From sequence record OR805295.1: a stretch of 64,000 nucleotides of DNA; one strand, 5' to 3'. A program made the translations under genes and the position numbers. Numbering within the stretch: position 1 is the first letter of the stretch; each line of letters begins with the position of its first letter. Positions 22,251 through 47,332 of the stretch are shown here, in pieces. The notes beneath the pieces are model-generated. The model did not search any database. It had not been told where the DNA came from and saw only the letters and a program-made list of their open reading frames with translations.

Positions 22251-22251
22251 A

Positions 22252-29102: not shown

Positions 29103-29104
29103 TT

Positions 29105-30902: not shown

Positions 30903-31993
30903 TATTTTTTACCGTATATTTCGTTGAGTTTATCTTCGTTTAGATTTACTCTGGCTTTTACTGCTTTAGATAGTGCTTGTTTTTCTGGTGCTGTAGTACA
31001 ATCATTATTTGTAACAATGTTTGTGTTATCGATGAATGTATCTAATAGCATATTTACTGGAGTCCATTTTCTCCTAGCATCATCTTCTATTTTTATATAG
31101 CGATTTCCTACTTTTCTAAATAATCTGTCTGGCTTAAAGTCTGTTCTTAAAAAGAATTCTCCCTCTTGCATATCATCTGGAAATTCTGTACCAGACCCTT
31201 TTAGTTTGTATGCATTTGGCGGCACACCAGTTCCAGTCCATAGTAATAATTCGAACGAACCGTTTTCTTTTTCTGCCATCCAGAGATGTGCAGCATCTGA
31301 CCATGTAGGATCGAACATAACATTTTTTCTTGCTTCTTCTATTATACCGTCTGTTATGTCTTGATATTTGTCGTCGTTTGTTATAGGGCATTTATTATCA
31401 TCATAACATCCGGCAGGACCTATTTCTTCTCCGTTGGGACCTATTGCTGTTCCGTCAGTTCCTATAATATCTTCGTATTCTTGACCGCCTTTTAGTTGTT
31501 GAGCTTTTACTCTCCATAAATGAGACCACCAGCCCGGACCATATCCTTCTGCAGAATGAGTAGCATCTTGAATTACATAATATCTATTTAATATAGGATC
31601 GTTAATATCTAGTGTATCGGGATCTCTTAAATGAGGTAATTCTAATACATCACCGGACATTAATTTTCTACCTATTTGATTTAGCATAGAATTATAATGA
31701 AATGTTATGAAAATGATATCGTTTGTTAAAAATATACCGAACTGTGATAAATCGAATTCAGAATTTTGCGGCTGATAACACCCCCTCAAGTCAAACAAAC
31801 TACTATCATATTTTCTATTTCTATTTTCTAAAAATAAAATATCTTCTATTGTAGTTTCGTCGCCTTTACCTGTCCCTACATATTTGTGAACTATAATTCC
31901 AGTACCGCCCATTTCTACAAAATCTTTTACAGTTCTGTCTACGAAACTATAGTCTTTTCCTTTGTTAGGATTCCAAAGTGATAACCGTGCCAT
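30902..31993 (-). CDS. gp14: Neck protein gp14-like
   Basis: DLSQFGIFL, GRKLMSGDVLELPHL context, upstream of gp15; GATAAATA on - at 32013-20. Confidence 0.75.
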   Translation of the reverse strand: MARLSLWNPNKGKDYSFVDRTVKDFVEMGGTGIIVHKYVGTGKGDETTIEDILFLENRNRKYDSSLFDLRGCYQPQNSEFDLSQFGIFLTNDIIFITFHYNSMLNQIGRKLMSGDVLELPHLRDPDTLDINDPILNRYYVIQDATHSAEGYGPGWWSHLWRVKAQQLKGGQEYEDIIGTDGTAIGPNGEEIGPAGCYDDNKCPITNDDKYQDITDGIIEEARKNVMFDPTWSDAAHLWMAEKENGSFELLLWTGTGVPPNAYKLKGSGTEFPDDMQEGEFFLRTDFKPDRLFRKVGNRYIKIEDDARRKWTPVNMLLDTFIDNTNIVTNNDCTTAPEKQALSKAVKARVNLNEDKLNEIYGKK

Positions 31994-32047
31994 ATAAACT
32001 CCTAGTTATAGGTATTTATCTGATAAAATAAACAAAAATATCTCAAT

Positions 32048-32074
32048 AAAAAAGCAACCTTAGGTTGCTTTTTT
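32048..32074 (-). terminator. Intrinsic terminator
   Basis: AAAAAAGCAACC-TTA-GGTTGCTTTTTT at the end of the fibre operon. Confidence 0.8.
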
Positions 32075-32557
32075 TTCTCTTTGCTTTTTTCTTAAATCGT
32101 TGTATTTTTTTTCATAATTAACTGATAGTTCGGGGAATTCTATTTTTAATAAATCTTGTGCTTTTTTTATTTTAGAAAAATCTACTTTTTCTGGTAAGTC
32201 TCGTAAAATATCTTTATCTTTTTCTATAATAGATAATATATCGGGGTTAGTTATATACTTAACTGCTTCTCTGTCAAGGGAAGCCAAAACCATATTTCTT
32301 TCAGTTCTTATATTTTTTAATGTTTTATTTGCAGCAGAATCTAAATCTATTACTACTTTAGTTGGATTTTGTATTTTATCAAATTTTAATGAATCGAAAA
32401 ATTGTTGTTCTAAAGTGTCGGGAAGTTTATCGTATATAACATATTGGGTATTTTCGTTAAATATACCCAGCGTATATAATTCTTCTGTAGATTTGTCTGT
32501 TATTAATTTAGCAACCCTTGTTTCGTCGATAGGGTTTGTATAAAAGATGGTTTTCAT
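32060..32557 (-). CDS. Putative tail fibre assembly chaperone
   Basis: IRTERNMVLASLD...KDILRDLP motif of tail-fibre assembly chaperones; last gene after three fibre paralogues. Confidence 0.6.
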   Translation of the reverse strand: MKTIFYTNPIDETRVAKLITDKSTEELYTLGIFNENTQYVIYDKLPDTLEQQFFDSLKFDKIQNPTKVVIDLDSAANKTLKNIRTERNMVLASLDREAVKYITNPDILSIIEKDKDILRDLPEKVDFSKIKKAQDLLKIEFPELSVNYEKKYNDLRKKQREKKAT

Positions 32558-32570
32558 GTGTATCTATCCT

Positions 32571-34106
32571 TTAGTAGTATATTACAAGTGAGAAGAACGG
32601 TGCATCGAAATAATCTTCGCCGAATCTGTTAGTCCAACCCGATGGATTGTAATTTATTATGTGATCTGCTTTTGTTATTTTACAGTTAACATCAAAATAT
32701 GTGGTAGTTTTTGTTGTTACCCATTGTTCAGTTATATTTAGTTGATTATTCCATACCATTGCATCGGCGTTTCCTAATACAACTACATAATTTGTATCTG
32801 GCGCAGGCACAGATAGATATACTCTATAGCGACCCGATGCTAATTTACTAACTGTTAAATTCCAGGAATCTAGTCTACTGCCAGTAGGACCGGACCAAGA
32901 TATCCATCCTTTTGATTTTTTTATTAAAGTGTTATATCCGGCCCATTCATTTAATGATTGCGCCGGAGTAAATCTCATAGTATTGTTTGAATTACTTCTT
33001 ACAAAACCTATTTTGCTATTTCTAGTAAATTGATCACTAGTATTGTTGCCCGTAGATCTTAACAATCTACCAGTGATAGAACCTGAGGAATCTCGCTCTA
33101 CTACAGTGCCTGGAGTAGCAAGCGTAGAGTTTATTCTACCGTCTAATGCAGCAGAATCTGATGCTTTACCGTTAACAGGAAGAGCCCCTATTTGTGCAGG
33201 CGTCGGTCTATATCCCAAATGAAATACTTGATTATTGCCAATGTATAGTTGATTTGGAGATAATCTATATTGTAATGCTAGAACAGGAGCTGTATTAAGT
33301 GAGCCTCTATTATATAGTTTAATAAAAACAGATGACGTACTAAGAGTAGTATTATTTAATTCTAATATAGTAGCTGATGAATTGTTAGTAGCTATTGTAT
33401 TATTAATAGATAGACCGTTAGAAATACCCCTAGATTCTAAGTATGATTTTCCTGATCTAAACGACATTAATCCGTCAGATGGTGTTACATTAATGGCTGC
33501 ATTTGCTACAGGAGCAGCAACCTTCATAAATTTTGCAGCAGGTATTCCGTTTAAATTATTCGAGTTTGCTGCTTTATCTGTTTTCTTTAGAAATAAAGCA
33601 TCTGCTTCTGCTTTAGTGTAAGTAACATCCTTACCGAAAACACCTAAATTTGTTCTAGCAGAACTTGCGTTTAATACGTCTGCAAAATTTTTAGATTTAT
33701 CGAATATAGGGTAATTTTCTAATTTATCTAGTTTTACTGAATATTTGTCTACTAAGTGAGGGTTATTATAGTTAGTAATATGAGCCCATACTGCATCTTC
33801 TTCGAATTTAGTAATAGGAACCCAGTTATTTATATTTGTACTATCTAATCCATTTGGTCCAGGGAATATGTACATTTGCCTTGTATTTTCTTTCCACCAT
33901 AACTGCCCCGTTACGGCAGATACCGGTGGAAGATGATATGAGAAATTATTTAGTATATTAATTAAATTCTCACCAACATCTTGTACATATGATTTTACAT
34001 AAGTTCCTGTGAATACTAATGAAGTTTCTGTATTTTTTTTTAAATCTTTGACTAAATAACCGCCGTCGATTAGTCTATATCGATAATGTTTTACTCTGTA
34101 ATTCAT
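32571..34106 (-). CDS. Virion fibre protein, paralogue 3
   Basis: ENLINILNNFS..PP....GQLWW anchor, H..NYNNPH.V motif, C-terminal KGWISWSG..SKLASGRYRVY domain. Confidence 0.75.
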   Translation of the reverse strand: MNYRVKHYRYRLIDGGYLVKDLKKNTETSLVFTGTYVKSYVQDVGENLINILNNFSYHLPPVSAVTGQLWWKENTRQMYIFPGPNGLDSTNINNWVPITKFEEDAVWAHITNYNNPHLVDKYSVKLDKLENYPIFDKSKNFADVLNASSARTNLGVFGKDVTYTKAEADALFLKKTDKAANSNNLNGIPAAKFMKVAAPVANAAINVTPSDGLMSFRSGKSYLESRGISNGLSINNTIATNNSSATILELNNTTLSTSSVFIKLYNRGSLNTAPVLALQYRLSPNQLYIGNNQVFHLGYRPTPAQIGALPVNGKASDSAALDGRINSTLATPGTVVERDSSGSITGRLLRSTGNNTSDQFTRNSKIGFVRSNSNNTMRFTPAQSLNEWAGYNTLIKKSKGWISWSGPTGSRLDSWNLTVSKLASGRYRVYLSVPAPDTNYVVVLGNADAMVWNNQLNITEQWVTTKTTTYFDVNCKITKADHIINYNPSGWTNRFGEDYFDAPFFSLVIYY

Positions 34107-34107
34107 A

Positions 34108-35706
34108 TTAGAAGAACCATGTAAATGTTATGTTGTTAGCGTCTGCGTATACATTAGTAAACGAATCTAAAGAATAGTTATTATAATTAATATTGTATGT
34201 TCTGAAGAATTCTAAATCTGTATAAGTAGTGCTTCTTAAATATACCAATGATGAATTGTAGCTAAGTCTCCCAGTGCCAGCAGCCATACCGGTAGATATT
34301 TGACCGTCACTAGTAACTCCTACAAACGGAACAACAGAACCCACAGCAGGCGTAGAAAATGAATTGTAATATATTCTATATTTCCCTGTACCTAGTTTAG
34401 TTAGTGTACAGTTATGTGACTTATAAGTAGAACCTGTTATTCCGTTAAATTGTATCCAAGCTTTAACTACACCTTTCGGTTCGTTAGCCCTAAACCACGA
34501 CTGGAATGAAGAGACATTTGCTCGTCTAACATAGTTATCGCTTGTATTTGAATTTCTAAATAGAATTAAATTTCCTGTTTCTATATTTTCGTCTGGATTA
34601 GAAACTTGAATGTGTCTAACATGTACATCTCCTGCACCATCTCTTAATACAACTGCATTGTCATTTGGACTGCTAGATTGATAAATGCCATTTAATAATA
34701 ATGTATTGACAGCCTTTCCGTTTAGTGGAAGTGAGCCGACAGCAGCGTTAGACGGTATTCTTCCTGTATGATACATTTCACTAGGATTAGTATCGTAGTC
34801 TATTATTAAATTAGTTTTTGTAAATCTATATGATTTTACTGGTTGTGCTGTTTGATTGTTTGCAGTAGCACGATTAAATACAACCATAGTAACTATAGGA
34901 TCACTATTATCGTTAATAAACGATAACATAGCACCGGTATCGTTTGCAGATGCAATTCTTCCGTCTGATCTTATTCCGGACAACAACTCTATATTTCCTG
35001 CACCTGTGTTAACTACTATAGAACCTTTAGAGTTATTATACGTTAACGCAGTATTAGTGATTATACTAGTTGTATCAAATGTTCTATAAACAACAGGGTT
35101 GTCTACAAGGACAAAATCAGCACTAGTTAAGCCATCTAATCTGTCAGTATTATTTACTGTACCACCTTTTGTCATAAAAAGATTGTTTACAGTAGTTTTA
35201 TTGTAAGTTTCTGAAGTCCCGTATACTTCTAAATTAGATCTGCATATAGATGCATCTAATACATCTGCAAGATTTAATGTTTTATTGAATGTGTAAACAT
35301 TAGGAACATTTCCCAATCCCACTTGTTCTTTTGTTGTCTCGTGGGGATCGTTAATACCTGTTCTTGATTCGTGATCTGTTAGCTCATTTAAAATAGTAGA
35401 TCCTAGATTTTTCCAATCGGAAGAAACAGACGTAGGTTTATCATTACTTATGTAAACTTTAACACTTTTTTCATCTGGATTAAACCATAATTGACCTTCT
35501 ATCGGATTTAACGGAGCAATAGTATGACTAAAATTTTCCATCTTCCATAGCATATTTTGGAAGAACTGACTTTTGTAAGATTCATTATACGATCCTATTA
35601 GTCCAATAGAAGAGTACGTATTGTCTATTTGTATATCGTTAACGGTTTTATTTGGTTTAGAAGAGCCGCCGTTGACAGATGAATAACGTTTAATAGTGTA
35701 AGGCAT
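34108..35706 (-). CDS. Virion fibre protein, paralogue 2
   Basis: QNMLWKMENFS..APLNPIEGQLWFN, NDPHETTKEQVGLGNV, VKAWIQFNG..TKLGTGKYRIY. Confidence 0.78.
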   Translation of the reverse strand: MPYTIKRYSSVNGGSSKPNKTVNDIQIDNTYSSIGLIGSYNESYKSQFFQNMLWKMENFSHTIAPLNPIEGQLWFNPDEKSVKVYISNDKPTSVSSDWKNLGSTILNELTDHESRTGINDPHETTKEQVGLGNVPNVYTFNKTLNLADVLDASICRSNLEVYGTSETYNKTTVNNLFMTKGGTVNNTDRLDGLTSADFVLVDNPVVYRTFDTTSIITNTALTYNNSKGSIVVNTGAGNIELLSGIRSDGRIASANDTGAMLSFINDNSDPIVTMVVFNRATANNQTAQPVKSYRFTKTNLIIDYDTNPSEMYHTGRIPSNAAVGSLPLNGKAVNTLLLNGIYQSSSPNDNAVVLRDGAGDVHVRHIQVSNPDENIETGNLILFRNSNTSDNYVRRANVSSFQSWFRANEPKGVVKAWIQFNGITGSTYKSHNCTLTKLGTGKYRIYYNSFSTPAVGSVVPFVGVTSDGQISTGMAAGTGRLSYNSSLVYLRSTTYTDLEFFRTYNINYNNYSLDSFTNVYADANNITFTWFF

Positions 35707-38069
35707 TATAGATTTACCCAGGATGAAAAATATACTTGTAATGATGCTAATCCCGGATCGTCATATTCCCTCGAATAATCCTGATAACCGGTTCCGTCGT
35801 TGTTATTAAAGTTACTGTTTAATGTACTAGCAACGTCAAAGTATGATAATGTTTTGTTATAGCAATATATAGACACTGCTCTAAATGCTTTAGAATAGTT
35901 AACAATATCTCCCTCTATGGCACCTACGTGCCCCTCTGACATACATTGTGTCATAACAGCATAATTTGTATTTGTTGGACGCAAAGTAGTAAAATAGAAT
36001 CTATATAATCCTGTTCCTAATTTTGTTATAGATAAGTTTAAAGTGTTTATTACAAAGAAGGAACCGCCCGTAAGATTTGTGTCTGAGAATGATGCCAGAC
36101 CTTTTGGCATATCTATTTCTACTTTCCAGTCATATCCTAAATAAGTTACTAATTGGTCCCTGCTAGCAAAACGAACATAATTGTCATTAGTATTATTATT
36201 TCTAAATGTTACTTGGGCATTTACTGACATAGGGTCTGCATTAGTGTATGTCATAATAAATGAAGATGCAGATAGATACCCGCCGTTTGCATCAGGAAGA
36301 TTAGAAGGTGTATATCTTACTGCTATTGTGTTGGCACCCGGACTAGTTGAATTTATTTTACCGTTAAGTAAATATGAATCTACGGCAGTACCGTTCCAAG
36401 CCAATGCTCCTACTTCGGCAGCGGTCGGCGGCCGTCTGTCGTGGAATGCTAAATTACCAGAACCTATATATAGATTGTCTGCTTTAAATGATATGATACT
36501 ATTTGCTACTAATGGTGTATTTATTGCACCAGTATCATAGAAGACAAACTGTATTCCGTTATCTAATGTATTGTTAGTAACCATATTCATACTAACAGCA
36601 GTAGTATTATTTTGAGAATGAATATCTGTAACAGTACCGCCTAGTATTAGACTAGTTCCATAATTGGGTTTATATGCTAATCTGAAACTATTATCATTCA
36701 TTACTATTACATCTCCTGATGTAACAGATGAAGTTATAGACGAAGTAACAAACGGTGTTTGTTTTTTAACGTAAGCTGTGCTATCTAACCCGCCTAGTAA
36801 TTCTGAATCTGGAGAAGAACTATTTGATTTATCTACGAATAGATTATTATATTCTTGGGAATTGTATGTTTCGTTTTTACCATATATAGATAAATTATTT
36901 CTAGCGGCTGCCTTATTTAAAACATCTGCTAGGTTCAGTGTTTTATCGAATGTATTTACGTTATCTACTAACCCTAGCCCTATCTGTTCTTTTGTAACTT
37001 GATGAGGGTCGTTTTTATCATTAATGTGAGCACTAAGTAAATCTAATGTGCCCTGAGTTAATGGATGCCATTTTGCTAGATTTGTAAATTCGCCAGGTTC
37101 TCCTACATATACATAAAATGATCCTTGTGTACCGGGTCCTTCTGTTTTATACCATAGTTGTCCTTTTATAGCATTTTGGGGAGGAGAAGAACTAGCAAAG
37201 TTTTCTACCATCCATATCATGGATTCACTAAATGCTTTTTCGTAACCTGCCGAATTATATCCTGGCATAGATATAGAAAGTAAGTTAGAAGAAATATAGT
37301 TATCAGGTACATTTAATCCTGGAATCTTGTTATAGCACTTTGCAGAAAAAGATAATACCTCGAAAGTACATAAATCCTGATTACCTGATACAAATCCAAA
37401 TAATGCAGATGTTTTAAAATCAGTTAGTATATCATCGTTTAGATCTATAGTAAACACTGAGTTATCTAATATTACGTTAGAATTCCAGTCGGAACACTTA
37501 GCTGTTATTTTATTATTTTCTCTAATTACATTGATAATTGTATATCTATTTGACCAACCGAGATATCCTGTAGATGATGTAGAAGTAGCCCCAGCAGGAC
37601 TATTAATTCCTATTGTTTTACTAGAAAGAATCGTTCTAGTTTTATTGTTATCTAAAATTAGTTCCCAATTCCTTCCGGATCCGCTGCTAGATGTGTTACC
37701 TAATGACCGGACAGCAGATATATATTTTCCTTTTTGTCCAGCAACACACAAACCTAACCTGTTATTTCTTATAGAATTGCTAGATATTTTTATTGTAATA
37801 TTAAAATCACTAACTTGATCCATGTATAACGCATAGCTATATAACGATGCTGCATTAGTTGATATAGGATCGGGAGTTCTTGTGTAAGAAAGAATAGAAG
37901 TAGCTGACCATCCTGCAGTGACGCCGCCTATTGCTTTTCCTTCCCATGCATCATACAAGTTAACTGATGTAGCTTTTGACCAATCAGAAACAACTTCTTG
38001 GTAACTAGGAAAAGAAGTTAGTTCTCTATTTTGGTAATAATTATTTGATAAACGTAATTCGTAACCCAT
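35706..38069 (-). CDS. Virion fibre protein, paralogue 1, with an extra ~240-aa beta-rich domain
   Basis: ESMIWMVENFA..PPQNAIKGQLWYK, NDPHQVTKEQIGLGLV, PKGLASF..TKLGTGLYRFY; GATAAATA on - at 38094-101. Confidence 0.78.
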   Translation of the reverse strand: MGYELRLSNNYYQNRELTSFPSYQEVVSDWSKATSVNLYDAWEGKAIGGVTAGWSATSILSYTRTPDPISTNAASLYSYALYMDQVSDFNITIKISSNSIRNNRLGLCVAGQKGKYISAVRSLGNTSSSGSGRNWELILDNNKTRTILSSKTIGINSPAGATSTSSTGYLGWSNRYTIINVIRENNKITAKCSDWNSNVILDNSVFTIDLNDDILTDFKTSALFGFVSGNQDLCTFEVLSFSAKCYNKIPGLNVPDNYISSNLLSISMPGYNSAGYEKAFSESMIWMVENFASSSPPQNAIKGQLWYKTEGPGTQGSFYVYVGEPGEFTNLAKWHPLTQGTLDLLSAHINDKNDPHQVTKEQIGLGLVDNVNTFDKTLNLADVLNKAAARNNLSIYGKNETYNSQEYNNLFVDKSNSSSPDSELLGGLDSTAYVKKQTPFVTSSITSSVTSGDVIVMNDNSFRLAYKPNYGTSLILGGTVTDIHSQNNTTAVSMNMVTNNTLDNGIQFVFYDTGAINTPLVANSIISFKADNLYIGSGNLAFHDRRPPTAAEVGALAWNGTAVDSYLLNGKINSTSPGANTIAVRYTPSNLPDANGGYLSASSFIMTYTNADPMSVNAQVTFRNNNTNDNYVRFASRDQLVTYLGYDWKVEIDMPKGLASFSDTNLTGGSFFVINTLNLSITKLGTGLYRFYFTTLRPTNTNYAVMTQCMSEGHVGAIEGDIVNYSKAFRAVSIYCYNKTLSYFDVASTLNSNFNNNDGTGYQDYSREYDDPGLASLQVYFSSWVNL

Positions 38070-38176
38070 GACAATGCTCGATATTCTTTATGATATTTAT
38101 CATAGTAATTTTAGGTAAATTTATGAAATTATATTTATTTTCTTTTATAAAACATAAAATATAGTTGTTTAATTTA

Positions 38177-38503
38177 ACTGGGTGTAATATAATTTGTAGT
38201 GTATGCAATACATTTGCATATATACCAAGCACTGTATGGTGAGTTGCATACAGCGATGGGCAATCGTAGTGCCGACATTGATCTAGTATGATCTGAAATA
38301 GGTCCCTTACGCCGAGGTAAGGCTATCTGGCACGGATAGTAGTGGATGTGTATGTTCGAAATAACGATATCATATTTTAGACATACGCCGCCGTCAGCAT
38401 TTTTAGTTTGCAACTGCTGATATCTTTAAGTTTTGTTGATGGCCGGGGGTGGTGCCCAGTGCATTTTTATTGTAGAGTTAATGTGTAAAAGAAATAAATG
38501 TGC
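38177..38503 (+). ncRNA. Candidate structured ncRNA (~285-330 nt), family unassigned
   Basis: Closing stem ACTGGGTG (38177-84)/TGCCCAGT (38453-60) enclosing at least six hairpins with G-U pairs on +; GC-rich island in AT-rich intergenic DNA. Confidence 0.6.
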
Positions 38504-38664
38504 TTAAAGACGAGGTTCTTTTCTAAAACTGTTTCTAAAAATAATTGCGTTAAAACCTTGGGTTTAATTAATGTATTATATATGCTATATAATTAGCCCT
38601 ACATAAACATGTATGTTTAACTTGTTTAGTTAACAATAAAATATGCAAATTAAGGAATTAACTG

Positions 38665-38832
38665 ATGACCAAATTTAATAAAAAATCGTTAGATACATAT
38701 GAAGATAGAGAAGATTATAGAGATGAAGAAACTGGTGACAGGTTAAATAATAAGAAATCTGAACCTAAAAAAAATAATACTGATTATAAGCCGTTTGGTA
38801 AAATTACCAACCGCTATAATAATGATAATTAA
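38665..38832 (+). CDS. Small charged hypothetical protein (55 aa), below ORF-track cutoff
   Basis: TAAGGA RBS; MTKFNKKSLDTYEDREDYRDEETGDRLNNKKSEPKKNNTDYKPFGKITNRYNNDN*. Confidence 0.6.
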   Translation: MTKFNKKSLDTYEDREDYRDEETGDRLNNKKSEPKKNNTDYKPFGKITNRYNNDN

Positions 38833-38860
38833 ATAGTAAATATTATTATCATTTACTACG

Positions 38861-39280
38861 GTGATAATAATGATAGAAACTATTTTAACCTCGAGAGTAT
38901 TTGCTTATGTAGTTTGCATAGGTATAATATCGTTAGCAATAACGCTCTCATATCAAAAATATCAAAAGCTTATTAGTGTAAATAAATCTCTTGAACAATC
39001 TATAGAAACGTTAACTAATGATAATAATTCATTGCAGTTAACTATTTCTGAACAAAATAAAAAGATTGAAACATATATTCAACTTAGATTATATGAAGAA
39101 TCTATAGCCAAACAAAAAGCAGAATCACATGCTGCTTTAGAAAAACAATTACAAGATACTAAATCTCAGTTAAATGAATTAATAGAACGTAGAAAGAATG
39201 AGGCACCAAATGATCAAAGTGTGTTATGCTCTACTGTCAGGATTGATCCTGCTTTACGCAACTGGATGCTCGCAAACTAA
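38861..39280 (+). CDS. i-spanin (Rz-like)
   Basis: N-terminal TM helix, long coiled coil, C-terminal LCSTVRIDPAL; overlaps a lipoprotein gene. Confidence 0.8.
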   Translation: MIIMIETILTSRVFAYVVCIGIISLAITLSYQKYQKLISVNKSLEQSIETLTNDNNSLQLTISEQNKKIETYIQLRLYEESIAKQKAESHAALEKQLQDTKSQLNELIERRKNEAPNDQSVLCSTVRIDPALRNWMLAN

Positions 39281-39527
39281 ACCAGTTAAATCTGTAGTGA
39301 TAGAAAAGGAAATAGTTCCTGTTCTTCCGCCAGATTCTCTTATAGTATATTGTTACGAAAATGAAAATCCCGATACGTATGGCGAAGCGGTAGGTTCGGT
39401 TAAAAAACTAAAATCTATAATTAAAAATTCTTGTAATAAAAATATGAAAGATATAGAACTTTGGAAATCTGAAGTTAAAAAACTATATCCTACTGCGAAT
39501 GACTTAGAAACAAAAAAGCAGCCTTAA
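39198..39527 (+). CDS. o-spanin (Rz1-like lipoprotein)
   Basis: Signal peptide with lipobox LLYATG-C, Pro-rich VPVLPPDSLIVYC; start may be Met5 (39210). Confidence 0.8.
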   Translation: MRHQMIKVCYALLSGLILLYATGCSQTKPVKSVVIEKEIVPVLPPDSLIVYCYENENPDTYGEAVGSVKKLKSIIKNSCNKNMKDIELWKSEVKKLYPTANDLETKKQP

Positions 39528-39787
39528 GCTGCTTTTTTATTGTCCGAGTCGCATGGGTTTATTTTATCTTTTATATTCTGTTTTATATAACTTCCTGCAA
39601 TACCTAGTATACTAAACAAACATACTAATCCTATAAATACGTGAGTTTCTATCAAAGAACTAAATCCAATAATTGCTGGAACACCGTATTGTGCAATAGC
39701 CATTAATAAATTCACTACATGGAAAATATAAGAATATCTTTTATATATTTTAGTCCAATTATCTGTTAATTTAAGTTTCCTAAACAT
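39524..39787 (-). CDS. Putative holin (2 TM)
   Basis: LTDNWTKIYKRYS start, two hydrophobic segments, YIKQ; adjacent to endolysin. Confidence 0.7.
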   Translation of the reverse strand: MFRKLKLTDNWTKIYKRYSYIFHVVNLLMAIAQYGVPAIIGFSSLIETHVFIGLVCLFSILGIAGSYIKQNIKDKINPCDSDNKKAA

Positions 39788-40281
39788 ACATTCCTCTCTT
39801 CAGTTCTTCGTTTTACTAATCCTTTTAAAACAACTCCTCCTGCTTTAGTCCATTTTAGCAATTCGTTGCATGCTCCTACTTTATCGCCTGCATTTAATTT
39901 TCTAAGCATTGTGGATTGATTTCCATTTTTTAATGTGACAAATCCGTCTTTAACCCCTTTTTTCCCCGGTCCTACGTTATATAAGAACGAAAGAAATGCA
40001 GCATGTTCGTATGGCGTTAATTCTACCTTTACTACATTTGTTAAGATTTTATTATGTTCTAAAAGATCTTTTGCTAATTGATCCAAACATTGGTCGTCTG
40101 TAAATTGTTGTCCTTTTTTTAGCTCAGGTCCAGTGTGACCGTAGCAAGATGTTAAAATTCCTACTGGATCTACATATACCTTGTTTACTTTACCTTCAAA
40201 CGGAGCTAATAGTGCTCCTCCTAGTGCAATTGCACCGGATAATCCCATTGCAATTAATTTTTTTCTAATATTATTATCCAT
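39766..40281 (-). CDS. SAR endolysin, T4-lysozyme-like muramidase (GH24)
   Basis: Gly/Ala-rich N-terminal SAR segment; catalytic E-8-D-5-T triad (FEGKVNKVYVDPVGILT); GLVKRRTEERNVC. Confidence 0.92.
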   Translation of the reverse strand: MDNNIRKKLIAMGLSGAIALGGALLAPFEGKVNKVYVDPVGILTSCYGHTGPELKKGQQFTDDQCLDQLAKDLLEHNKILTNVVKVELTPYEHAAFLSFLYNVGPGKKGVKDGFVTLKNGNQSTMLRKLNAGDKVGACNELLKWTKAGGVVLKGLVKRRTEERNVCLGNLN

Positions 40282-40401
40282 ACTAATCCTTTATAAAATA
40301 AAACGTGTTAACATATATGTCAACTATATGTATAACGGCAGCTTTGCAATAGTAGCATTATGCTATATACTGTTTTTATAACATAAACCGTTGGAGTATA
40401 T

Positions 40402-40833
40402 ATGACACTTATTTCGCAAATAAAAGCAGATCAACTTTCTGCTCGTAAATGTAAAAATAAAATAGCTACATCTCTCCTTACTACACTACTTTCAGAAGCA
40501 TCTCAACCCGGCATAAATGACGGAAAGAGAGAATCTACAGATAACGAAGTAATAAGTGTAATTAATTCGTTTATCAAGAATAACAAAATAGCACAAGAAA
40601 ATGCTAGCAAAGATATTCTTTGCGTATTACAAGAAGAATTAGCTATCTTAGTTTCTTATCTACCCGAACAATATACAAAAGATAAATTAACTGAGATTAT
40701 ATCTAAATATATAAATAATAATCCTGATTTTACTATTTCGTCTGTTATGCAGTATTTACGACAAAATCATTCAGGAAAATATGAAGGTAGAATGGCAAAA
40801 GAAATAATTGATACTTGTATGCAGGGAGTTTAG
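40402..40833 (+). CDS. GatB/YqeY-domain protein
   Basis: QIKADQLSARK...LLTTLLSEA...STDNEVISVI...ELAILVSYLPEQ...VMQYL...YEG pattern. Confidence 0.85.
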   Translation: MTLISQIKADQLSARKCKNKIATSLLTTLLSEASQPGINDGKRESTDNEVISVINSFIKNNKIAQENASKDILCVLQEELAILVSYLPEQYTKDKLTEIISKYINNNPDFTISSVMQYLRQNHSGKYEGRMAKEIIDTCMQGV

Positions 40834-40834
40834 T

Positions 40835-41047
40835 GTGAAAATTTTAGAAATGGCAGAATCTAGTTGGATAGAATTTGTAGAAAGAAAAGACAATGATGTT
40901 ATATTGCAGACAAAGTCTGGATATACATATCTTATAAAACGAGTTCCAGATGACGTATGGCTCGAATGGAATATAGCTCCTTCCGCAGGGGCGTATTTTG
41001 TTGCAAATATAAGAAACAAATATCAAATTAATAAAGTTGTAGGATAA
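40835..41047 (+). CDS. KTSC-domain protein
   Basis: SSWI...GYTY....VPDDVW......PSAGAYF..NIRNKY; GTG start after GGGAG RBS. Confidence 0.75.
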   Translation: MKILEMAESSWIEFVERKDNDVILQTKSGYTYLIKRVPDDVWLEWNIAPSAGAYFVANIRNKYQINKVVG

Positions 41048-41517
41048 TGATAGAAATAATAGCAGCAATTGGACCCAAATTAGAAATAGGACTCAATGGA
41101 CGATTGCCATGGAATTACATATCGGAGGATATGGCTCATTTTAAAAAACACACAATAGGGAAATGTGTTATAATGGGTAAGACGACGTTCGAGAGTTTAA
41201 ATAAAATACCTCTGTCTGGTCGTACTAACATTGTGATGTCTACTAATGAAATTTACACAGGCGTATGCAACGTAAGATCGGTCAAAGATGCGTTAGATAC
41301 AGCAATGATAAAAGACAAAGGAATTGCAGTGATAGGCGGCGCCAGCATCTATAAACAATTTGAAGGTATAGCAACTAAACTTGTAATAACACATATACCG
41401 GATAAGTATATATCGTCTGCAGATACTTATTTTCCAATAGATCTAAATAATTGGAATGTTTTTAACGAATATAATATAACATCTGATATAATTGTTAAGG
41501 AATATGTTAAAAAATGA
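41047..41517 (+). CDS. frd: Dihydrofolate reductase
   Basis: IG..G.LPW...EDMAHFK, VIMGKTTFESL..PL.GRTNIV, IGGA.IY, ADTYFP. Confidence 0.95.
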   Translation: MIEIIAAIGPKLEIGLNGRLPWNYISEDMAHFKKHTIGKCVIMGKTTFESLNKIPLSGRTNIVMSTNEIYTGVCNVRSVKDALDTAMIKDKGIAVIGGASIYKQFEGIATKLVITHIPDKYISSADTYFPIDLNNWNVFNEYNITSDIIVKEYVKK

Positions 41518-41759
41518 TATTTTTTCATATTTTAGGGGTTGTAGGTACAGTATGTGTATTATTCTGTTATTGGATGATAGCAGAAGGTAAATGGACAAAT
41601 AAAACTAAAAAATATTATTTAATTAATGGAATCGGCGCGTTATTTTTGTTAGCTAGTTTAGTTGTTAATTTTAATTTAGGATCTGTAATTCTAGAGATAT
41701 TCTTTTTGATTATTACTGTTCGTGGATATTTAAAGGCAATAAAAGAAAACGATGTATAA
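41514..41759 (+). CDS. Small membrane protein (CBU_0592-like)
   Basis: Three hydrophobic segments; LGVVG....L..Y, Y.LINGIGA..L..SL...FN...V.LE pattern. Confidence 0.7.
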   Translation: MIFFHILGVVGTVCVLFCYWMIAEGKWTNKTKKYYLINGIGALFLLASLVVNFNLGSVILEIFFLIITVRGYLKAIKENDV

Positions 41760-42021
41760 CGAAATAATAAACCGTATAAATTCTGAACAAGAATTTAAGA
41801 GATTATTAAAGGCGTCTGATACTAATTTTCCTGTAAAAATATCTAAACATTTTATATTTGATAAATCTTCTAATGTTTCTCTAAATATGAAAGATATAAT
41901 TTATCCTGTTGTATGTATAACTGTGTTTTCATTTGTGCAAAATACAGATATAGGTGTATGCAATCACCATGTATATCCATTAGAGTGCATTAAAGCTAAA
42001 TTGTTTACTGAGGAAAATTAA
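41752..42021 (+). CDS. Hypothetical protein
   Basis: Overlapping start/stop in tightly packed operon. Confidence 0.65.
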   Translation: MYNEIINRINSEQEFKRLLKASDTNFPVKISKHFIFDKSSNVSLNMKDIIYPVVCITVFSFVQNTDIGVCNHHVYPLECIKAKLFTEEN

Positions 42022-42576
42022 ATGGGATCTCATTTAATAAAAACTGGTGTAAAAAATATAAAAAATAATTCTCAACAGATAGAATTTGACGATATAGTTA
42101 AGTTAGTATCTGATTCGTATAACAGATGTGTAAATGAAATAAACAAATCAAAAATAGAATCCGATCTGTTATTAGAAACAACGTACTCTGAAGAAATAGA
42201 ATACGTCGAACGGATAATTAATTTTTATAGGAAAAAAAATACAAAATTATTGTTAAATGCAATGAAAATTACTAAAACAAAACATTTACTTTTTTCTATT
42301 AAGTCTGCAACTGCTCGCCCTGCTCACGGCGAAGTGCTATGTATTGGTAGATATAAAGGTTGGCCATCTGCTTGGGCTATACTTGAAAATGTAATAGGTA
42401 TACACACATCTTGTGGTAATTCTAATCAACAACAATTTCAACTATTAAATATAAACTTAATAGACAAAAAATTTATTAATAACGTAGTGGATGAAAATGG
42501 AAATATAGTTATTGATTCCGAAATTCGTAAGGAATTAGAAAAATACGCTGTAGTAACTAGGAAAAGTTGGTATTAA
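42022..42576 (+). CDS. Hypothetical protein
   Basis: Abuts previous stop; GAGG RBS. Confidence 0.7.
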   Translation: MGSHLIKTGVKNIKNNSQQIEFDDIVKLVSDSYNRCVNEINKSKIESDLLLETTYSEEIEYVERIINFYRKKNTKLLLNAMKITKTKHLLFSIKSATARPAHGEVLCIGRYKGWPSAWAILENVIGIHTSCGNSNQQQFQLLNINLIDKKFINNVVDENGNIVIDSEIRKELEKYAVVTRKSWY

Positions 42577-42591
42577 TAATAGGGGTAAAAC

Positions 42592-43155
42592 ATGAATATT
42601 TCCTTGCGCCGCGCCAGAAAATTAGAAATTAAATTAAAGAATTTTTTAAATGAATCTGCAAATTATAAAGCACAGATTAGGGTAAATTCTAATAGTGAAC
42701 AAATCATAGAAACACTACATGTATCTAGGGTAAAATTTGAAACTGAATTAGAAAATAAAAGAAAACTAATATCTGCTAGATTTAAAATAAGAGAACTAAT
42801 TGGTAAAAATAATCACAACGTAGGCATCGATAATCTTATTACCCAAAGAGAGCACATAAAAGAACAAATAGTTCTTCTGCAAACTATGTTACTTAATGAT
42901 ACTGTAGAAGATTGTATTGCATGTGATATAATAGAAGCAGAACGAAAACTCAATGAATCTATGGGTAAGAAAACTACTGTAGTTCCTGTTTCTATTATAA
43001 ATTCTAATTTAAAATCAAAATACTTATTAGAAAAAAATTCATTAAAAGCACGTTTAGACGAAATTGATGAAAAGATTTTATCGTTAAACAATTCTACTAC
43101 TATAACAATTGATGACGATATAAAAGAATTATTGTTAGATAATAGACTTATTTAA
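42592..43155 (+). CDS. Hypothetical coiled-coil protein
   Basis: AGGGG RBS; helical composition. Confidence 0.75.
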   Translation: MNISLRRARKLEIKLKNFLNESANYKAQIRVNSNSEQIIETLHVSRVKFETELENKRKLISARFKIRELIGKNNHNVGIDNLITQREHIKEQIVLLQTMLLNDTVEDCIACDIIEAERKLNESMGKKTTVVPVSIINSNLKSKYLLEKNSLKARLDEIDEKILSLNNSTTITIDDDIKELLLDNRLI

Positions 43156-43226
43156 TAATCATATATAACTATTGACGTTATATTTTAATTGTGTTTTACT
43201 ATGTAAAAATTTTAAGGAATAAAAAT

Positions 43227-43478
43227 ATGAAAGTAGAAATTTACGGTAAAGAAAATTGTCCGCATTGTAAAAATGCAGTTCAGTTATGTGAAATGAGGGG
43301 ATTAGAATACTATTATTATGATGTTAGTGATCAAGAAACCGGAATGGAATTAATAACAGAATTAACTAATCGTATAGGAACTAGGCCGAAATCTGTTCCT
43401 CAAATTTTTATCGATAATCAACATGTGGGAGGATATACTCAGTTTCATTGTGCATTAGATGCAGCAAGGAATATGTAA
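43227..43478 (+). CDS. Glutaredoxin
   Basis: IYGKENCPHC, SVPQIFID..HVGGY; start moved to ATG 43227 after TAAGGA RBS. Confidence 0.93.
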   Translation: MKVEIYGKENCPHCKNAVQLCEMRGLEYYYYDVSDQETGMELITELTNRIGTRPKSVPQIFIDNQHVGGYTQFHCALDAARNM

Positions 43479-43628
43479 ATAAAACTATTGTATGTTTTTG
43501 TGTAAAGATGTAATACTTCGTTTTATCGGTTAAATTTTAAAAATTTTCTAATTCAGTAAACAAAAAGGTCGTGTTAGAAACATTTTGTAAAAATTTCTTT
43601 AAAACTTATATAGATATTTGGTTATTAC

Positions 43629-44159
43629 ATGTCTAGCATATATAGTAAGTTAAAAGATATAATAATTATCGATGTGGAAGCTAGTGGATCGTATCCTATT
43701 GAGATTGGATTTATAACTAGTTCGGGCAAAATAGAATCTAATTTAATAAGAAGACACCATTCTTGGTTATCTTGGGACTATAGAGCAGAAAGAAAAGTCC
43801 ATAAAATTTCTAAGAGTATGCTTAGCTCGCACGGAATAAGTGTTAGGAATGCTTGCACATGGTTAAATGAGTCATTATGCGGAAAGACTGTATATTCTGA
43901 TTGCGCACAAAATGATAATAAGTGGTTACGTGCATTATTTTCTGCAGGAAACTGCGGGCAGAATTTTAGAGTATTAGATACTAACAATCTAATGCCGCAG
44001 TATCCGAAACGGTTTTATAATGAAAAATTTTTAGAATTTAAGAGAAAGAATTATAAATTAACTCAACAACACAGAGTAGATTCAGATGTTTTAGTAATTA
44101 AAGATTCTTTATTGGAACTAGCAGAATTGGAAGAGTTTATTAATGAGCAGTTTAACTGA
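43629..44159 (+). CDS. DEDDh 3'-5' exonuclease-like protein
   Basis: IIDVEASG..YPIEIG, SD...ND, HRVDSDV motifs. Confidence 0.78.
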   Translation: MSSIYSKLKDIIIIDVEASGSYPIEIGFITSSGKIESNLIRRHHSWLSWDYRAERKVHKISKSMLSSHGISVRNACTWLNESLCGKTVYSDCAQNDNKWLRALFSAGNCGQNFRVLDTNNLMPQYPKRFYNEKFLEFKRKNYKLTQQHRVDSDVLVIKDSLLELAELEEFINEQFN

Positions 44160-44322
44160 TATAAAAGAATTGATAGAAAAGAAGAGCATTAATATAGCCA
44201 TACTAGAATTTTCTGGCTGGTACTTAAAGACTAATATTGGTATTTTTACATTAATAGGAGACCAGTATTATAAAGATGGAACACCTATTTCTAAAAAAGA
44301 AATTGAGGAACTTCTAAAATGA
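44143..44322 (+). CDS. Small hypothetical protein (59 aa), below ORF-track cutoff
   Basis: MSSLTDIKELIEKKSINIAILEFSGWYLKTNIGIFTLIGDQYYKDGTPISKKEIEELLK*; overlaps both neighbours. Confidence 0.65.
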   Translation: MSSLTDIKELIEKKSINIAILEFSGWYLKTNIGIFTLIGDQYYKDGTPISKKEIEELLK

Positions 44323-44606
44323 AACGAGTTGCATTATTGATACCATTGTGTGTTTTATATGGTTGCAGTTCTAATCCATATGAAAACAATATAGTCAATA
44401 ATGCAACTCGTTATGTAACAGTAGAAACACCAGAAACAATAAGCAGAAACATTGCAAACCGATATGTATTAAATACCGATGAATTTCCTGCAAAACCCCA
44501 CGACACATATAAAATGTATGGCGAACAAATTAAATCTACCTTTAGGGGAAATGCAAGAAGATTAATAGAATCTACTATTATTTCTATATTTAGAAATAAT
44601 AGATAA
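44319..44606 (+). CDS. Putative lipoprotein
   Basis: MKRVALLIPLCVLYG-C signal peptide with lipobox. Confidence 0.7.
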   Translation: MKRVALLIPLCVLYGCSSNPYENNIVNNATRYVTVETPETISRNIANRYVLNTDEFPAKPHDTYKMYGEQIKSTFRGNARRLIESTIISIFRNNR

Positions 44607-44608
44607 TA

Positions 44609-45037
44609 TTATTTCTTTCTTTTCTTAGATGCTACAGGTTTTATTTCGTCTGCTGCATGTTCTGTTTTAGATTCGTTATTAACTGTAGTTTCATTAGAAA
44701 CAATTGCTTTATTTGTCGGTTTCTCTTCTATTTTAGAAAAATCCTTACATGCATCCCATTCAAACTCTTTAAAATGTGCAGGACCATCGTATACAACTAC
44801 TCTTACTTCTTCGATTTTTAAAGTAGGATATACTACACCATCTATTTCTACTAAGCCGCAAATTTCAAACTCCTTTAAGAGCGAAGGATCGGTTTGATTA
44901 GTTAACACACATCTTCCGGTGCATTTACCTACCTCTACATTAAATTTTCTATTGCTTATTTGGGATAATATTGTTGCTTTTCCTGCAGGTTCATAAGGAA
45001 CTTTGGCAAAAAATTTTACTTTATTAAGAAATATCAT
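44609..45037 (-). CDS. Hypothetical late protein
   Basis: AGGAG RBS; GATAAATA on - at 45061-68; basic C-terminus. Confidence 0.7.
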   Translation of the reverse strand: MIFLNKVKFFAKVPYEPAGKATILSQISNRKFNVEVGKCTGRCVLTNQTDPSLLKEFEICGLVEIDGVVYPTLKIEEVRVVVYDGPAHFKEFEWDACKDFSKIEEKPTNKAIVSNETTVNNESKTEHAADEIKPVASKKRKK

Positions 45038-45079
45038 AATCTTCTCCTAAGTTTATTTAATATTTATCTGCTAATACAT

Positions 45080-45108
45080 TTGACGAAATACATTGAATAT
45101 TTTAAAAT
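45080..45108 (+). promoter_or_regulatory. Sigma70-type promoter for rIIA/rIIB
   Basis: TTGACG-17 nt-TAAAAT; the ORF-track TTG start at 45080 is this -35 box. Confidence 0.7.
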
Positions 45109-45148
45109 ATTGCAAATAAACACGTATAATTCAGTTTGGGAGTGTAGC

Positions 45149-47332
45149 GTGAAATTAGAATCGGATAATTCTGTAACAATAGAATCTACAAACATGGTAG
45201 GTGGAAAATCTTTCACTATTAAAAATAGTCCGAAAGCCTTTTCTATTCTATCTAACGGGTTATATAAAGATAAAATTCGTGCAATTGTAAGAGAAATTGG
45301 GTGTAATGCACGAGATAGTCATGTTGCAGCAAATAAATGTGATGTTCCTTTTGAATATCATGTTCCTACTGATTTAGAGCCGTTTTTTAGCATAAAAGAC
45401 TTCGGTGTAGGTTTAGATTACAACGAAGTAATGAATATTTATACTACTTATTTTGATTCTACAAAAACACAATCAAATGATTTTATTGGTGCTTTTGGGC
45501 TCGGATCAAAGTCACCGTTTTCCTATGTAGATAATTTTTCTATAATTTCTACAAAAGATGGAATAACAAGAACTTTCGCTGCATTTATAAGTGAATCTGG
45601 TGTTCCGGATATGCTTATGCTAAGCGAAATGAAAACAAATGAGCCCAACGGAGTTGAAGTAAAGATTCCTGTATCAAATCGGGCTGATTACAAAATTTTT
45701 GATAAAAACTGTGTAGATGTATATTCGTGGATGAATGTGTTGCCAGTAGAAGTAAATGGCCACCATGTATTAAAAACCCCAGAAGTTTTTCTATCTGTAA
45801 CAAACAGAGCTACAATATATAAAGGCACTAATGAATCACATAAACTATACGCAAGACAGGGCGGAGTATTATATCCAATTGATATAGAATCTATATCCGA
45901 AGAATATCTTGATGATAGCTATGTCCGTAAATTAGATAATAGAAACTTTTATTCATATTTTGTTGTAATAGATTTTAGTATAGGAGAATTAGATGTATCT
46001 GCATCTAGAGAAGAATTATCTTATATTCCGTTAACTCAGAAAAATTTATCTACTGCATTAATTGATTTCGTATGTTCCTTTACTAAAGCTATCACAGATG
46101 ATATAAATTCTAATATAGACGCAGTAACGAAAACAAAAGTGTTATATGAATATAAACAGAAATCATTTAATATATTTGTTCCTGATATAAAAACATTAAC
46201 CAATATCATATATGCCAATATTTCGGATTCTGTAGAGATAGGTCAAGTATATATACCGATATCTGAAGTAAAAGCATTGTTTACCAATGTTAACTATTAT
46301 ACACTGGATTATGGTATTTTTAGGAAGGCAAGATTTTTAGTTACATACTATAAACATCTAAGTACAGGTGAAATAAAAAGATATAGAAATTATACTTCCA
46401 GTGCCTCATACGAAGGTATAACATATATTTCTGATAATATAGCAATTGACGATAGTAATACTGTAAAATATTTTATAATAGATGATAATACATCGACAAG
46501 AGCAATAAGAGACTATATATCGAATATTTACAGAGCACGGTGTAAAGTTATAATTTGTAAAAATAAAAATGGAAAAATAAAAAGAAACGATATATATAAT
46601 TTCGCAAGAAAATATTATATTTCTAAATCGCAAATTATATTTTCGTCTGATCTAAATATTCCTGTTATTCCTAAGCAAAATAACAGAATCAAAAAAGAAG
46701 ATGAAGAATGTATTTTGTTATGCAGAAGTTTTAATATATGGAAAGAATCGATAGTAAAGCTGTCTGATATAAAGGATGATTGCTATTATGTAGAATTTTC
46801 TGGATGGAATATGACTACTGATTTGTCTGATTCGGATATTACTGCACTTACATTATATCATTCTAAACCGATATACGGGGTAAGAAAGATAACCTTAGAA
46901 CAAGTCAAGAAAAATAAACATTTTATTCCTATTACTGATCATGTAATAGATGAAATGTATAATAATGTTAAGGATGTTATAAAACAGTGTAGACCAGATT
47001 CTACTTATTCCGATGTAGACAAATTGCTTTATTATATAAATTCTGCAAACTTAAAGGACTCATTAACAAATACTGAAATAAAAGAATATGAAAAATACAA
47101 AAATACTTATAAACCGATTAGTGAGTCGTCGATTAAAAATATCATACGACATTTAGATACAGAAAAACTAGCTAATCAATTAAAAATAATACATAAACGC
47201 GCCAGCCGGTATGAAAATATTCTATCTAAGTATCCGCTTATTGAACACATCAATTTAAGTAAAGTAGGTATAGTACACGTAGTGAATTATATGAATATGA
47301 TAGATAACAACGGAGAATCTAAAAATGACTAA
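45149..47332 (+). CDS. rIIA: rIIA protein (GHKL ATPase N-terminus)
   Basis: FSILSNGLYKDKIRAIVREIGCNARDSH, IKDFGVGL, STKTQSNDFIGAFGLGSKSPFSY; GTG start after GGGAG. Confidence 0.92.
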   Translation: MKLESDNSVTIESTNMVGGKSFTIKNSPKAFSILSNGLYKDKIRAIVREIGCNARDSHVAANKCDVPFEYHVPTDLEPFFSIKDFGVGLDYNEVMNIYTTYFDSTKTQSNDFIGAFGLGSKSPFSYVDNFSIISTKDGITRTFAAFISESGVPDMLMLSEMKTNEPNGVEVKIPVSNRADYKIFDKNCVDVYSWMNVLPVEVNGHHVLKTPEVFLSVTNRATIYKGTNESHKLYARQGGVLYPIDIESISEEYLDDSYVRKLDNRNFYSYFVVIDFSIGELDVSASREELSYIPLTQKNLSTALIDFVCSFTKAITDDINSNIDAVTKTKVLYEYKQKSFNIFVPDIKTLTNIIYANISDSVEIGQVYIPISEVKALFTNVNYYTLDYGIFRKARFLVTYYKHLSTGEIKRYRNYTSSASYEGITYISDNIAIDDSNTVKYFIIDDNTSTRAIRDYISNIYRARCKVIICKNKNGKIKRNDIYNFARKYYISKSQIIFSSDLNIPVIPKQNNRIKKEDEECILLCRSFNIWKESIVKLSDIKDDCYYVEFSGWNMTTDLSDSDITALTLYHSKPIYGVRKITLEQVKKNKHFIPITDHVIDEMYNNVKDVIKQCRPDSTYSDVDKLLYYINSANLKDSLTNTEIKEYEKYKNTYKPISESSIKNIIRHLDTEKLANQLKIIHKRASRYENILSKYPLIEHINLSKVGIVHVVNYMNMIDNNGESKND

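Follow-up and report, generated by a model that had tools for sequence, protein, structure and literature searches.

What occupies the GC-rich island that separates a fibre operon from a set of lysis genes in the phage DNA of sequence record OR805295.1? The stretch of 64,000 nucleotides (nt) analysed here, called the window below, had been interpreted before from its letters alone, and this sequence-only reading took positions 38177-38503 for a structured and unassigned non-coding RNA on the + strand. The window comes from a jumbo phage of Pseudomonas aeruginosa that belongs to Wroclawvirus (PA5oct/Paride-type), the single genus of the family Arenbergviridae. The island is an RNA that is already known, ncRNA003 of phage PA5oct, and its core at 38200-38427 is under strong purifying selection at nearly every base. 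A probability of roughly 0.55 is given to the island being a functional, hairpin-rich non-coding RNA transcribed from the + strand, whatever its mechanism. That this RNA works specifically as a leader or attenuator in cis is a more tentative proposal, well short of an even chance.

The island sits in a gap of 595 nt between a minus-strand fibre/YomR-like gene (35706-38069) and a plus-strand gene of 55 amino acids (aa), gp169 (38665-38832). The location that had been given for it, between the fibre operon and the lysis genes, is correct: to the left lies the fibre/YomR-like structural operon on the - strand, and to the right a + strand unit that leads to the spanin genes. What the present analysis adds to the published RNA are the bounds of the element, a fold model, a promoter assignment, strong purifying selection that breaks off sharply on the 3' side, and arguments against an antisense open reading frame (ORF) at the same locus.

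An RNA already known from PA5oct

The GenBank record of PA5oct (MK797984) contains, under the locus tag EST35_0168, a + strand feature at 103065..103668 that is described as 'putative lncRNA; ncRNA003; annotation based on RNA-Seq data'. Table 1 of the corresponding paper places ncRNA003 at 103065...103368 on the + strand, based on stranded RNA sequencing (RNA-seq) (Lood et al., 2020; PMC7318152). When the PA5oct coordinates are aligned to the window they correspond to 38212..38515 using the end given in the paper, or to 38212-38816 using the end given in GenBank, in both cases on the + strand. The PA5oct locus and the window are 99.2% identical over 501 nt, and the two elements lie on the same strand with nearly the same bounds (38212-38515 versus 38177-38503). 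The 3' ends of ncRNA003 in the paper (103368) and in GenBank (103668) are 300 nt apart, while the ends of ncRNA001, ncRNA002, and ncRNA004 agree between the two sources, and one of the two ncRNA003 ends is presumably a misprint.

The sequence-only reading had made its case depend on the existence of a transcript, and the published stranded RNA-seq of PA5oct shows a + strand RNA. The proposal of a non-coding, unassigned RNA of the + strand is also borne out, since the same stretch is marked as ncRNA003 and no match to Rfam, transfer RNA (tRNA) or transfer-messenger RNA (tmRNA) was obtained. A search with Rfam 15 at the gathering thresholds gave no match in the whole window, and with permissive filters and E <= 10 the sole match in 37900-38800 was a chance similarity to a small nucleolar RNA outside the element. 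ARAGORN found no credible tRNA or tmRNA in the window, whether under default, relaxed or mitochondrial settings or when introns were allowed; at the 80% threshold it gave two implausible cloverleaves, one of them with 14% GC. The Rfam families covered include riboswitches, ribozymes, RNase P, the signal recognition particle RNA, 6S RNA, tmRNA, group I/II introns, CRISPR repeats, and phage RNAs.

ncRNA003 is a scarce RNA. It accounts for 0.01, 0.05, and 0.03% of the phage reads at 5, 15, and 25 min, respectively (PMC7318152), and as it covers about 0.1% of the genome length its read density is below the genome average. ncRNA001 and ncRNA002 make up 1-5% of the phage reads (PMC7318152), and are roughly 25 to 500 times more abundant. 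These two and ncRNA004 were defined in the same study, by the same type of evidence and in the same genome, and they are likewise orphans; no sequence similarity between them and ncRNA003 was detected by blastn-short or nhmmer. In a preprint from 2018 an 'ncRNA003' is off the scale, but this preprint used another assembly with five ncRNAs, and its numbering is not equatable with the final one. The final publication defined ncRNA003 by read coverage alone, without an analysis of structure, promoter, conservation or function. Several later records of the genus annotate the antisense ORF at this locus, while others annotate nothing.

The 501 bases around the island are 97.4-100% identical to 11 GenBank records, all of them Wroclawvirus and each with one site. 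The relatives named in GenBank are PA5oct, MIJ3, Paride, Ettore, Cassandra, Deifobo, Callisto, PAC2, 30-2, and 30-3. The known copies are those in the 11 GenBank genomes and in five Logan/ENA contigs, which were reached via cluster members of the neighbouring YomR-like protein, and no homologues were found outside the genus. Neither blastn-short nor nhmmer detected any paralogue within the window. IMG/VR was searched using one 35-mer and three 18-19-mers and yielded no copy, only 25 chance matches with no flanking similarity. Twenty-two of these 25 matches are due to one 18-mer of the core that coincides with the start of one conserved gene, found in viral contigs with a GC content of 0.57-0.61. 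Patterns obtained by back-translating the antisense ORF gave no confirmed relative in the JGI metagenomes or in the GTDB genomes.

Selective constraint on the core

Variation around the island was assessed in a set of eight genomes with full flanks, comprising the window, PA5oct, MIJ3, and the five Logan/ENA contigs, and in a set of 12 sequences that also includes four more GenBank genomes. In the eight genomes none of the 228 positions of the core (38200-38427) is variable. Directly downstream follows a G-rich segment (38428-38460), in which 5 of 33 positions (15%) vary, all of them in MIJ3 alone, and then an AT-rich spacer (38461..38664, + strand) that reaches from the core region to gp169 and is variable at 18 of its 204 positions (8.8%). 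The genes encoding the YomR-like protein, gp169, and gp170 may serve as a reference: 77 of their 978 third codon positions (7.9%) are variable, as are 20 of the 1956 first and second positions (1.0%). According to Fisher's test the core differs from the third positions (p = 8e-8) and from the spacer (p = 9e-7), while the spacer is indistinguishable from the third positions (p = 0.67). The spacer also contains several indels. Upstream of the core, the divergent promoter block at 38070-38199 has 2 variable sites out of 130 (1.5%). The core is conserved like first and second codon positions, and this shows that ncRNA003 is more than transcriptional noise.

The five substitutions in MIJ3 are found within 23 nt (38428-38450) straight after the invariant core, and three of them exchange U and C opposite a G in the predicted fold. 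This cluster could be a small recombination patch or reflect relaxed selection. One of the indels in the spacer is a 12-nt deletion (window positions 38520-38531) shared by the Logan contigs SRR24309835 and SRR30213626, which removes part of a 14-nt direct repeat flanking the island. The possibility that this repeat is a target-site duplication was considered and rejected; one repeat copy is partly deleted in the two contigs.

Together with adjoining positions the core forms an invariant run of 250 nt, and its sole match in the 3.6-kb stretch studied is a run of 264 nt over the 3' half of the Rz-like gene, gp170. One alternative is that the island has no function of its own, but is the relic of an acquired sequence in a patch of low diversity left by a recent recombination sweep, and that the ncRNA call reflects pervasive low-level transcription. 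The very low expression is compatible with this, as is the patchiness of the diversity, gp170 having just 3 variable sites among 136 third positions, and the stability of the fold is unexceptional for the genome (see below). However, the variable fraction changes from 0/228 via 5/33 to 18/204 within a few bases, and this holds among lineages with differences in both flanking regions. For the second long invariant run there is moreover a partial explanation, as its last 83 nt also encode Rz1 and thus belong to two overlapping spanin genes. Finally, an unconstrained GC-rich island in an AT-rich intergenic region should decay. An island devoid of function is for these reasons the least probable of the explanations considered.

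The core is not entirely without variation in the larger set. The 12 sequences display three substitutions, two in hairpin loops (38210 and 38245) and one at 38393 that converts a G.U to an A-U pair, and one single-base insertion that falls in a predicted loop. At position 38440, the partner of 38393 in a longer alternative helix, eight sequences have U and four have C, so that the pair is G.U or G-C. The five Logan/ENA contigs contribute one additional indel and no additional core substitution. All the changes seen are neutral for the + strand fold, but this is weakly informative, since an estimated one in eight random sets of changes would match equally well.

Could the constraint instead be that of a protein? 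An ORF of 79 codons with a TTG start runs antisense to the RNA at 38174..38413 (- strand), and in two relatives it extends to 96 codons from an ATG. If this small protein were the target of selection, the + strand reads would be incidental antisense transcription. The ORF has been called automatically, as a hypothetical protein, in Paride, Cassandra, Ettore, and PAC2. In its favour, and therefore against an RNA as the selected product, four of the five variable sites among the 12 sequences are synonymous third positions, which is the proportion also seen in the real genes of this region (216:53). The sequence-only reading had itself named translation and conservation of this ORF as the outcome that would overturn it, and the evidence from codon usage, homologues, frozen third positions, and a frameshift goes against the ORF. 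Within the core none of its about 71 third positions varies in the eight genomes, compared to an expectation of about 5.6 (P about 0.003); the third positions are frozen, so the constraint is not codon-shaped. The codon score of the ORF is -0.045 per codon, while long genes score 0.45 +/- 0.10 and likely small genes 0.26-0.69, and its GC content at third codon positions (GC3) is 0.36 versus 0.21. The TTG start is not preceded by a Shine-Dalgarno sequence, and shuffling the island yields a stop-free run of the same length in 12.5% of cases. A frameshifting single-base insertion is present in one of the 12 sequences, and the longer form starting at ATG is open in 2 of the 12 and interrupted by one in-frame stop in the other 10.

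The searches at the protein level point in the same direction. An exhaustive HMMER search of 1.84 billion representatives returned only the ORF itself and repeat-protein artefacts. The matches to giant repeat proteins, with E = 1e-13, were rejected since they add up from numerous weak matches to single repeats, each of about 22 bits. The 90% cluster of the ORF has two members, both from NCBI phage records, and no PHROG or Pfam family matches it. The structure predicted by AlphaFold2 has a mean predicted local distance difference test (pLDDT) score of 44.9. Gene callers left the ORF uncalled on all five Logan/ENA contigs, and the RNA-seq-guided annotation of PA5oct has a + strand ncRNA at the locus, not a minus-strand coding sequence. 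A small minus-strand protein is hence a very unlikely source of the constraint; the ORF is judged not to be a gene, and its annotation in several GenBank records is probably wrong. A type I toxin-antitoxin system was also rejected, as the translated ORF has no hydrophobic membrane-type segment and its translation is unlikely.

Fold, promoter, and a possible role in cis

The GC content of the island reaches 0.49 in 100-nt windows, compared to 0.33 for the whole window, confirming that a GC-rich island is present. Coding regions of the window reach 0.51, however, so the island is unusual for intergenic DNA only. All the helices that had been quoted for it were recovered, namely ACTGGGTG/TGCCCAGT, TATGCAA/TTGCATA, CTGTATG/CATACAG, CGAT/ATCG, and CCTTAC/GTAAGG, as well as CTATCT/GGATAG, GTGTATGTT/GACATACGC, TCAGCA/TGCTGA, and the AU-rich stem at 38461-38503. 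For 38177-38503 the minimum free energy (MFE) is -98.9 kcal/mol on the + strand (z = -2.81, with none of 100 shuffles as good) and -70.1 kcal/mol on the - strand (z = -2.29). As a background, 56 randomly placed 284-nt windows were folded on both strands, giving 112 values with a mean z of -0.67 (sd 1.55), and among these the element ranks 8th for the + strand and 10th for the - strand. The predicted stability is thus above chance, moderately so, and unexceptional for this genome. When only 38200-38430 is folded, the + strand obtains z = -2.78 (1 of 200 shuffles as good) and the - strand z = -1.82 (11 of 200), and the core fold contains 11 G.U pairs on the + strand versus 5 on the - strand. A preference for the + strand is accordingly seen for the core only; over the full span the z values of the two strands are similar.

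This strand asymmetry matters for a further alternative, in which the selected feature is the DNA itself, either as a protein-binding or architectural element at the divergent promoters or as a replication or recombination site, with the hairpins and the low transcription as by-products. Such an element would explain that the invariant block continues from the promoter into the core, 38081-38427 having one variable site in the eight genomes, and that the predicted loops are conserved as well. It would also fit the similar full-span z on both strands and the location at a switch of gene orientation. On the other hand, the core contains no iterons or repeated binding motifs, and both its G.U asymmetry and its better z on the + strand point to RNA. 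The known substitutions are all neutral for the + strand fold, and the transcript is documented. A purely DNA-level element is therefore regarded as improbable.

The conserved core is predicted to form six consecutive hairpins on the + strand. H1 (38200-38222) has a mean pair probability of 0.93, H3 (38281-38347) of 0.82-0.99, and H4 (38348-38388) of 0.96-0.99, while H2 (38232-38253), H2b (38254-38280), and H5' (38393-38421) are predicted with 0.5-0.6. H5' is followed by a U-rich stretch. The G-rich segment at 38428..38460 provides the 3' arms of alternative long-range helices, in which 38390-38399 is predicted to pair with 38434-38443, and 38257-38262 with 38453-38458. When folding is started at 38200 the second of these closes a domain in the predicted structure; this complementarity had been listed earlier as a possible pseudoknot. 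The loop complementarities that were proposed as pseudoknots are short, and they are in competition with local helices.

Two outer parts of the structure first proposed are probably not included in the functional unit. The 5' arm of the outer closing helix (38177-38184) is situated between the -35 and -10 elements of the best promoter and upstream of the published 5' end at 38212; for this reason it is probably absent from the RNA, and the closing helix would then not form. The 11-bp stem at the 3' side is an AU-rich stem-loop (38461..38503, + strand) that is indeed predicted, but it is poorly conserved, with six variable columns and a closing G-C pair that is missing in 10 of the 12 sequences. 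No U-run follows this stem-loop, and it was not called as terminator-like.

The promoter in question is a sigma-70-type candidate on the + strand at 38165..38193, consisting of TTGTTT, a 17-nt spacer, and TATAAT. It ends 6 nt ahead of H1 and 18 nt ahead of the published 5' end. The start predicted from it, near 38200, coincides with the first base of H1, the published 5' end being 12 nt downstream. PA5oct promoters have been reported as TTGAC / TATAATA. The AT-rich block at 38070..38199 would serve divergent transcription, leftward into the fibre operon and rightward into the RNA, and it contains promoter-like hexamers on the minus strand at 38127-38099 and 38119-38090. No terminator-like site was found in 37900-39000, while the same scan gives 12 such sites in 28000-47900; H5' with its U-rich stretch is at best a weak terminator candidate.

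These features can be combined into a model for action in cis. Host RNA polymerase would initiate near 38200 from the promoter candidate, back-to-back with the promoter of the fibre operon, and the first approximately 230 nt of the transcript would fold into six adjacent hairpins, the first of which starts the RNA. Hairpins at the 5' terminus are well established as stabilising bacterial RNAs. Such a hairpin and the compact array behind it might constitute a nuclease-resistant 5' domain, that is, a structured leader heading a rightward transcription unit that continues through the spacer into gp169 and the Rz/Rz1 spanin genes. Positions 38390-38399 could alternate between H5', with the U-rich stretch after it, and the longer helix formed with 38434-38443, and this alternation would set the amount of transcription or of intact mRNA that reaches the lysis genes. 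On this model, the discrete 'ncRNA' in the RNA-seq data would correspond to a stable product from the 5' end of the leader. The published + strand transcription, the hairpin array, the constraint at every position, the non-coding character, and the confinement to one genus are established, while we infer the exact start, the 3' end, and any effect on the downstream genes.

Judged as a riboswitch or attenuator, the island has a conserved domain and alternative pairings for 38390-38399, but no canonical terminator, and it is separated from gp169 by the spacer of 204 nt. This spacer is the first of several points that weigh against a functional leader. It evolves at about the rate of third codon positions and accumulates indels, as would not be expected of a riboswitch's or attenuator's expression platform, and it contains possible promoters, both of which argue against a tight, riboswitch-like coupling; gp169 may have a separate promoter there. 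The published 3' end (38515, or 38816 in GenBank) matches neither the end of the core at 38427 nor any terminator. The start site is predicted from the sequence, and promoter-like hexamers occur at chance frequency in this AT-rich genome: the pattern TTG-N20-TATAAT has two matches in the 64-kb window, 38165-38193 included, where 3.5 would be expected by chance. The thermodynamic support is modest (rank 8 of 112), with the strands about equal over 38177-38503. Across the 16 known copies of the element the identity does not drop below 97%, too little variation for covariation to show, and the three core substitutions include no double change. Every base is conserved, in the loops as well as in the stems, which is beyond the needs of structure alone and would also fit a DNA-level or a dual constraint.

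Action in trans is another alternative. In this case the island would encode an independent structured RNA of about 230-300 nt that acts on host or phage factors, be it as a scaffold or decoy for proteins, as a ribozyme or as a mimic of tRNA. The PA5oct authors annotated a discrete feature that ends before gp169, the loops as well as the stems are almost absolutely conserved, as would fit a surface that is read by partners, and a 5'-terminal hairpin followed by a compact hairpin array is typical of stable RNAs. The low share of the reads, relative to the genome length covered and to ncRNA001 and ncRNA002, argues against it, as does the failure to find a match in Rfam even at E <= 10 or any tRNA or tmRNA. 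The RNA also has neither a terminator of its own nor a repeated loop motif, and a comparison with the remainder of the window revealed no significant complementarity. The particular functions first suggested for it were not supported. No ribozyme family is matched; the cloverleaf and the T-arm of a tRNA mimic are both absent, and the segment GTTCGAA, taken to be T-loop-like, spans a stem and a bulge of H4 without any T-arm context. A protein sponge is difficult to reconcile with 0.01-0.05% of the phage reads, a density below the genome average, and with the lack of a repeated loop motif. A sponge of the Rsm/CsrA type, having GGA in its loops, was considered separately and rejected. A complementarity of 10 nt between H1 and the sequence just upstream of the ribosome-binding site of gp169 is broken in MIJ3, and it was judged to be due to chance.

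An RNA working in trans is therefore considered unlikely. The low read density, the missing terminator before gp169, the absence of a repeated protein-binding motif, and the position directly upstream of gp169 and the spanins make a leader in cis more probable than an abundant sponge. More speculative, and a little further down the scale of likelihood, is a riboregulator of a new, genus-specific class, in which the core, a hairpin array of about 230 nt, would sense some factor of the phage or the host and thereby control expression of the spanin unit, or would itself be catalytic or act as a decoy. In an odder variant the locus may be doubly constrained, with a structured + strand RNA lying over a translated minus-strand micro-protein. 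This would account for the frozen state of all positions, and for the fact that the few changes seen are synonymous as well as neutral for the fold.

Neighbouring genes and comparison with known systems

To the left of the island, the gene at 35706..38069 on the - strand is the first of the leftward operon and encodes a YomR-like virion or tail-fibre-related structural protein. This protein of 787 aa is 100% identical to that of Paride only. No relative with 35%-99% identity was found among 5.8 billion proteins and none in IMG/VR, and other phages give partial matches only. To the right, gp169 has an AAGGA Shine-Dalgarno sequence and gene-like codon usage (codon score 0.69). It is followed on the + strand by gp170 (38870-39280), which matches the Rz-like spanins in PHROG, and by the overlapping gp171 (39198-39527), which is Rz1/LysC-like with a score of 49.6 bits against Pfam LysC (cut-off 27). 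Convergent with gp169 and the spanin genes, on the - strand, are a gene of 87 aa with a weak likeness to holins (39524-39787) and a lysozyme gene (39766-40281). In PA5oct gp170 and gp171 are labelled 'structural proteins', but their sequences and overlapping reading frames suggest a spanin pair of the Rz / Rz1 (LysC) kind. Together with the weakly holin-like gene and the lysozyme they look like a lysis cassette. Neither spanins nor a holin are mentioned in the PA5oct paper.

A few other places in the window are conspicuous with respect to folding. The strongest signal among the sampled windows (z = -7.6, minus strand) belongs to a near-perfect hairpin of about 100 nt at ~44315-44413, which has a perfect stem of 18 bp and overlaps the start of a + strand ORF of 95 aa. 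The windows 22151-22434, 901-1184, and 49951-50234, with z from -4 to -4.9, also give stronger signals than the island itself. In addition, 10811-12325 is a gene-poor stretch of 1.5 kb for which the PA5oct annotation has just ORFs of 38-50 aa. A promoter that matches the consensus perfectly, TTGACA-N17-TATAAT, is located at 10943-10971, and the z values at 12051-12334 are strongly negative on both strands; the stretch may be the 'first' ncRNA candidate of the sequence-only reading.

Jumbo phages of the PA5oct type are possible agents for phage therapy, and one of them, Paride, has attracted attention because it kills dormant P. aeruginosa. About 70% of the genes in phages of this type, as well as all four ncRNAs defined by RNA-seq, are of unknown function. 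The present analysis replaces a vague 'lncRNA' label by a defined, bounded, and testable element beside the lysis genes, although its general significance is limited for now, ncRNA003 being an orphan RNA of one genus.

Among known systems, the late promoter of lambdoid phages offers a parallel. Transcription from pR' to tR' yields a short leader, the '6S' RNA, which is extended into the lysis genes by Q antitermination. The likeness to the island would be positional only: in both cases a sigma-70 promoter, a candidate one in the island, would give rise to a discrete non-coding RNA of small size just ahead of lysis genes. Unlike the 6S leader, the RNA described here is not followed by an intrinsic terminator, and a Q-like factor was neither sought nor found; it is longer and far more structured, and a spacer that evolves like third codon positions and has possible promoters separates it from the genes. 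A second group of comparable RNAs comprises GOLLD, ROOL, HEARO, the pRNA of phi29, and the stable RNAs C and D of T4. The island is smaller than GOLLD or ROOL; it is not located beside tRNA genes, is confined to one genus, and matches no Rfam model. What it has in common with the members of this group is that it is phage-borne, GC-rich relative to its surroundings, made up of multiple hairpins, and of unknown or non-canonical function.

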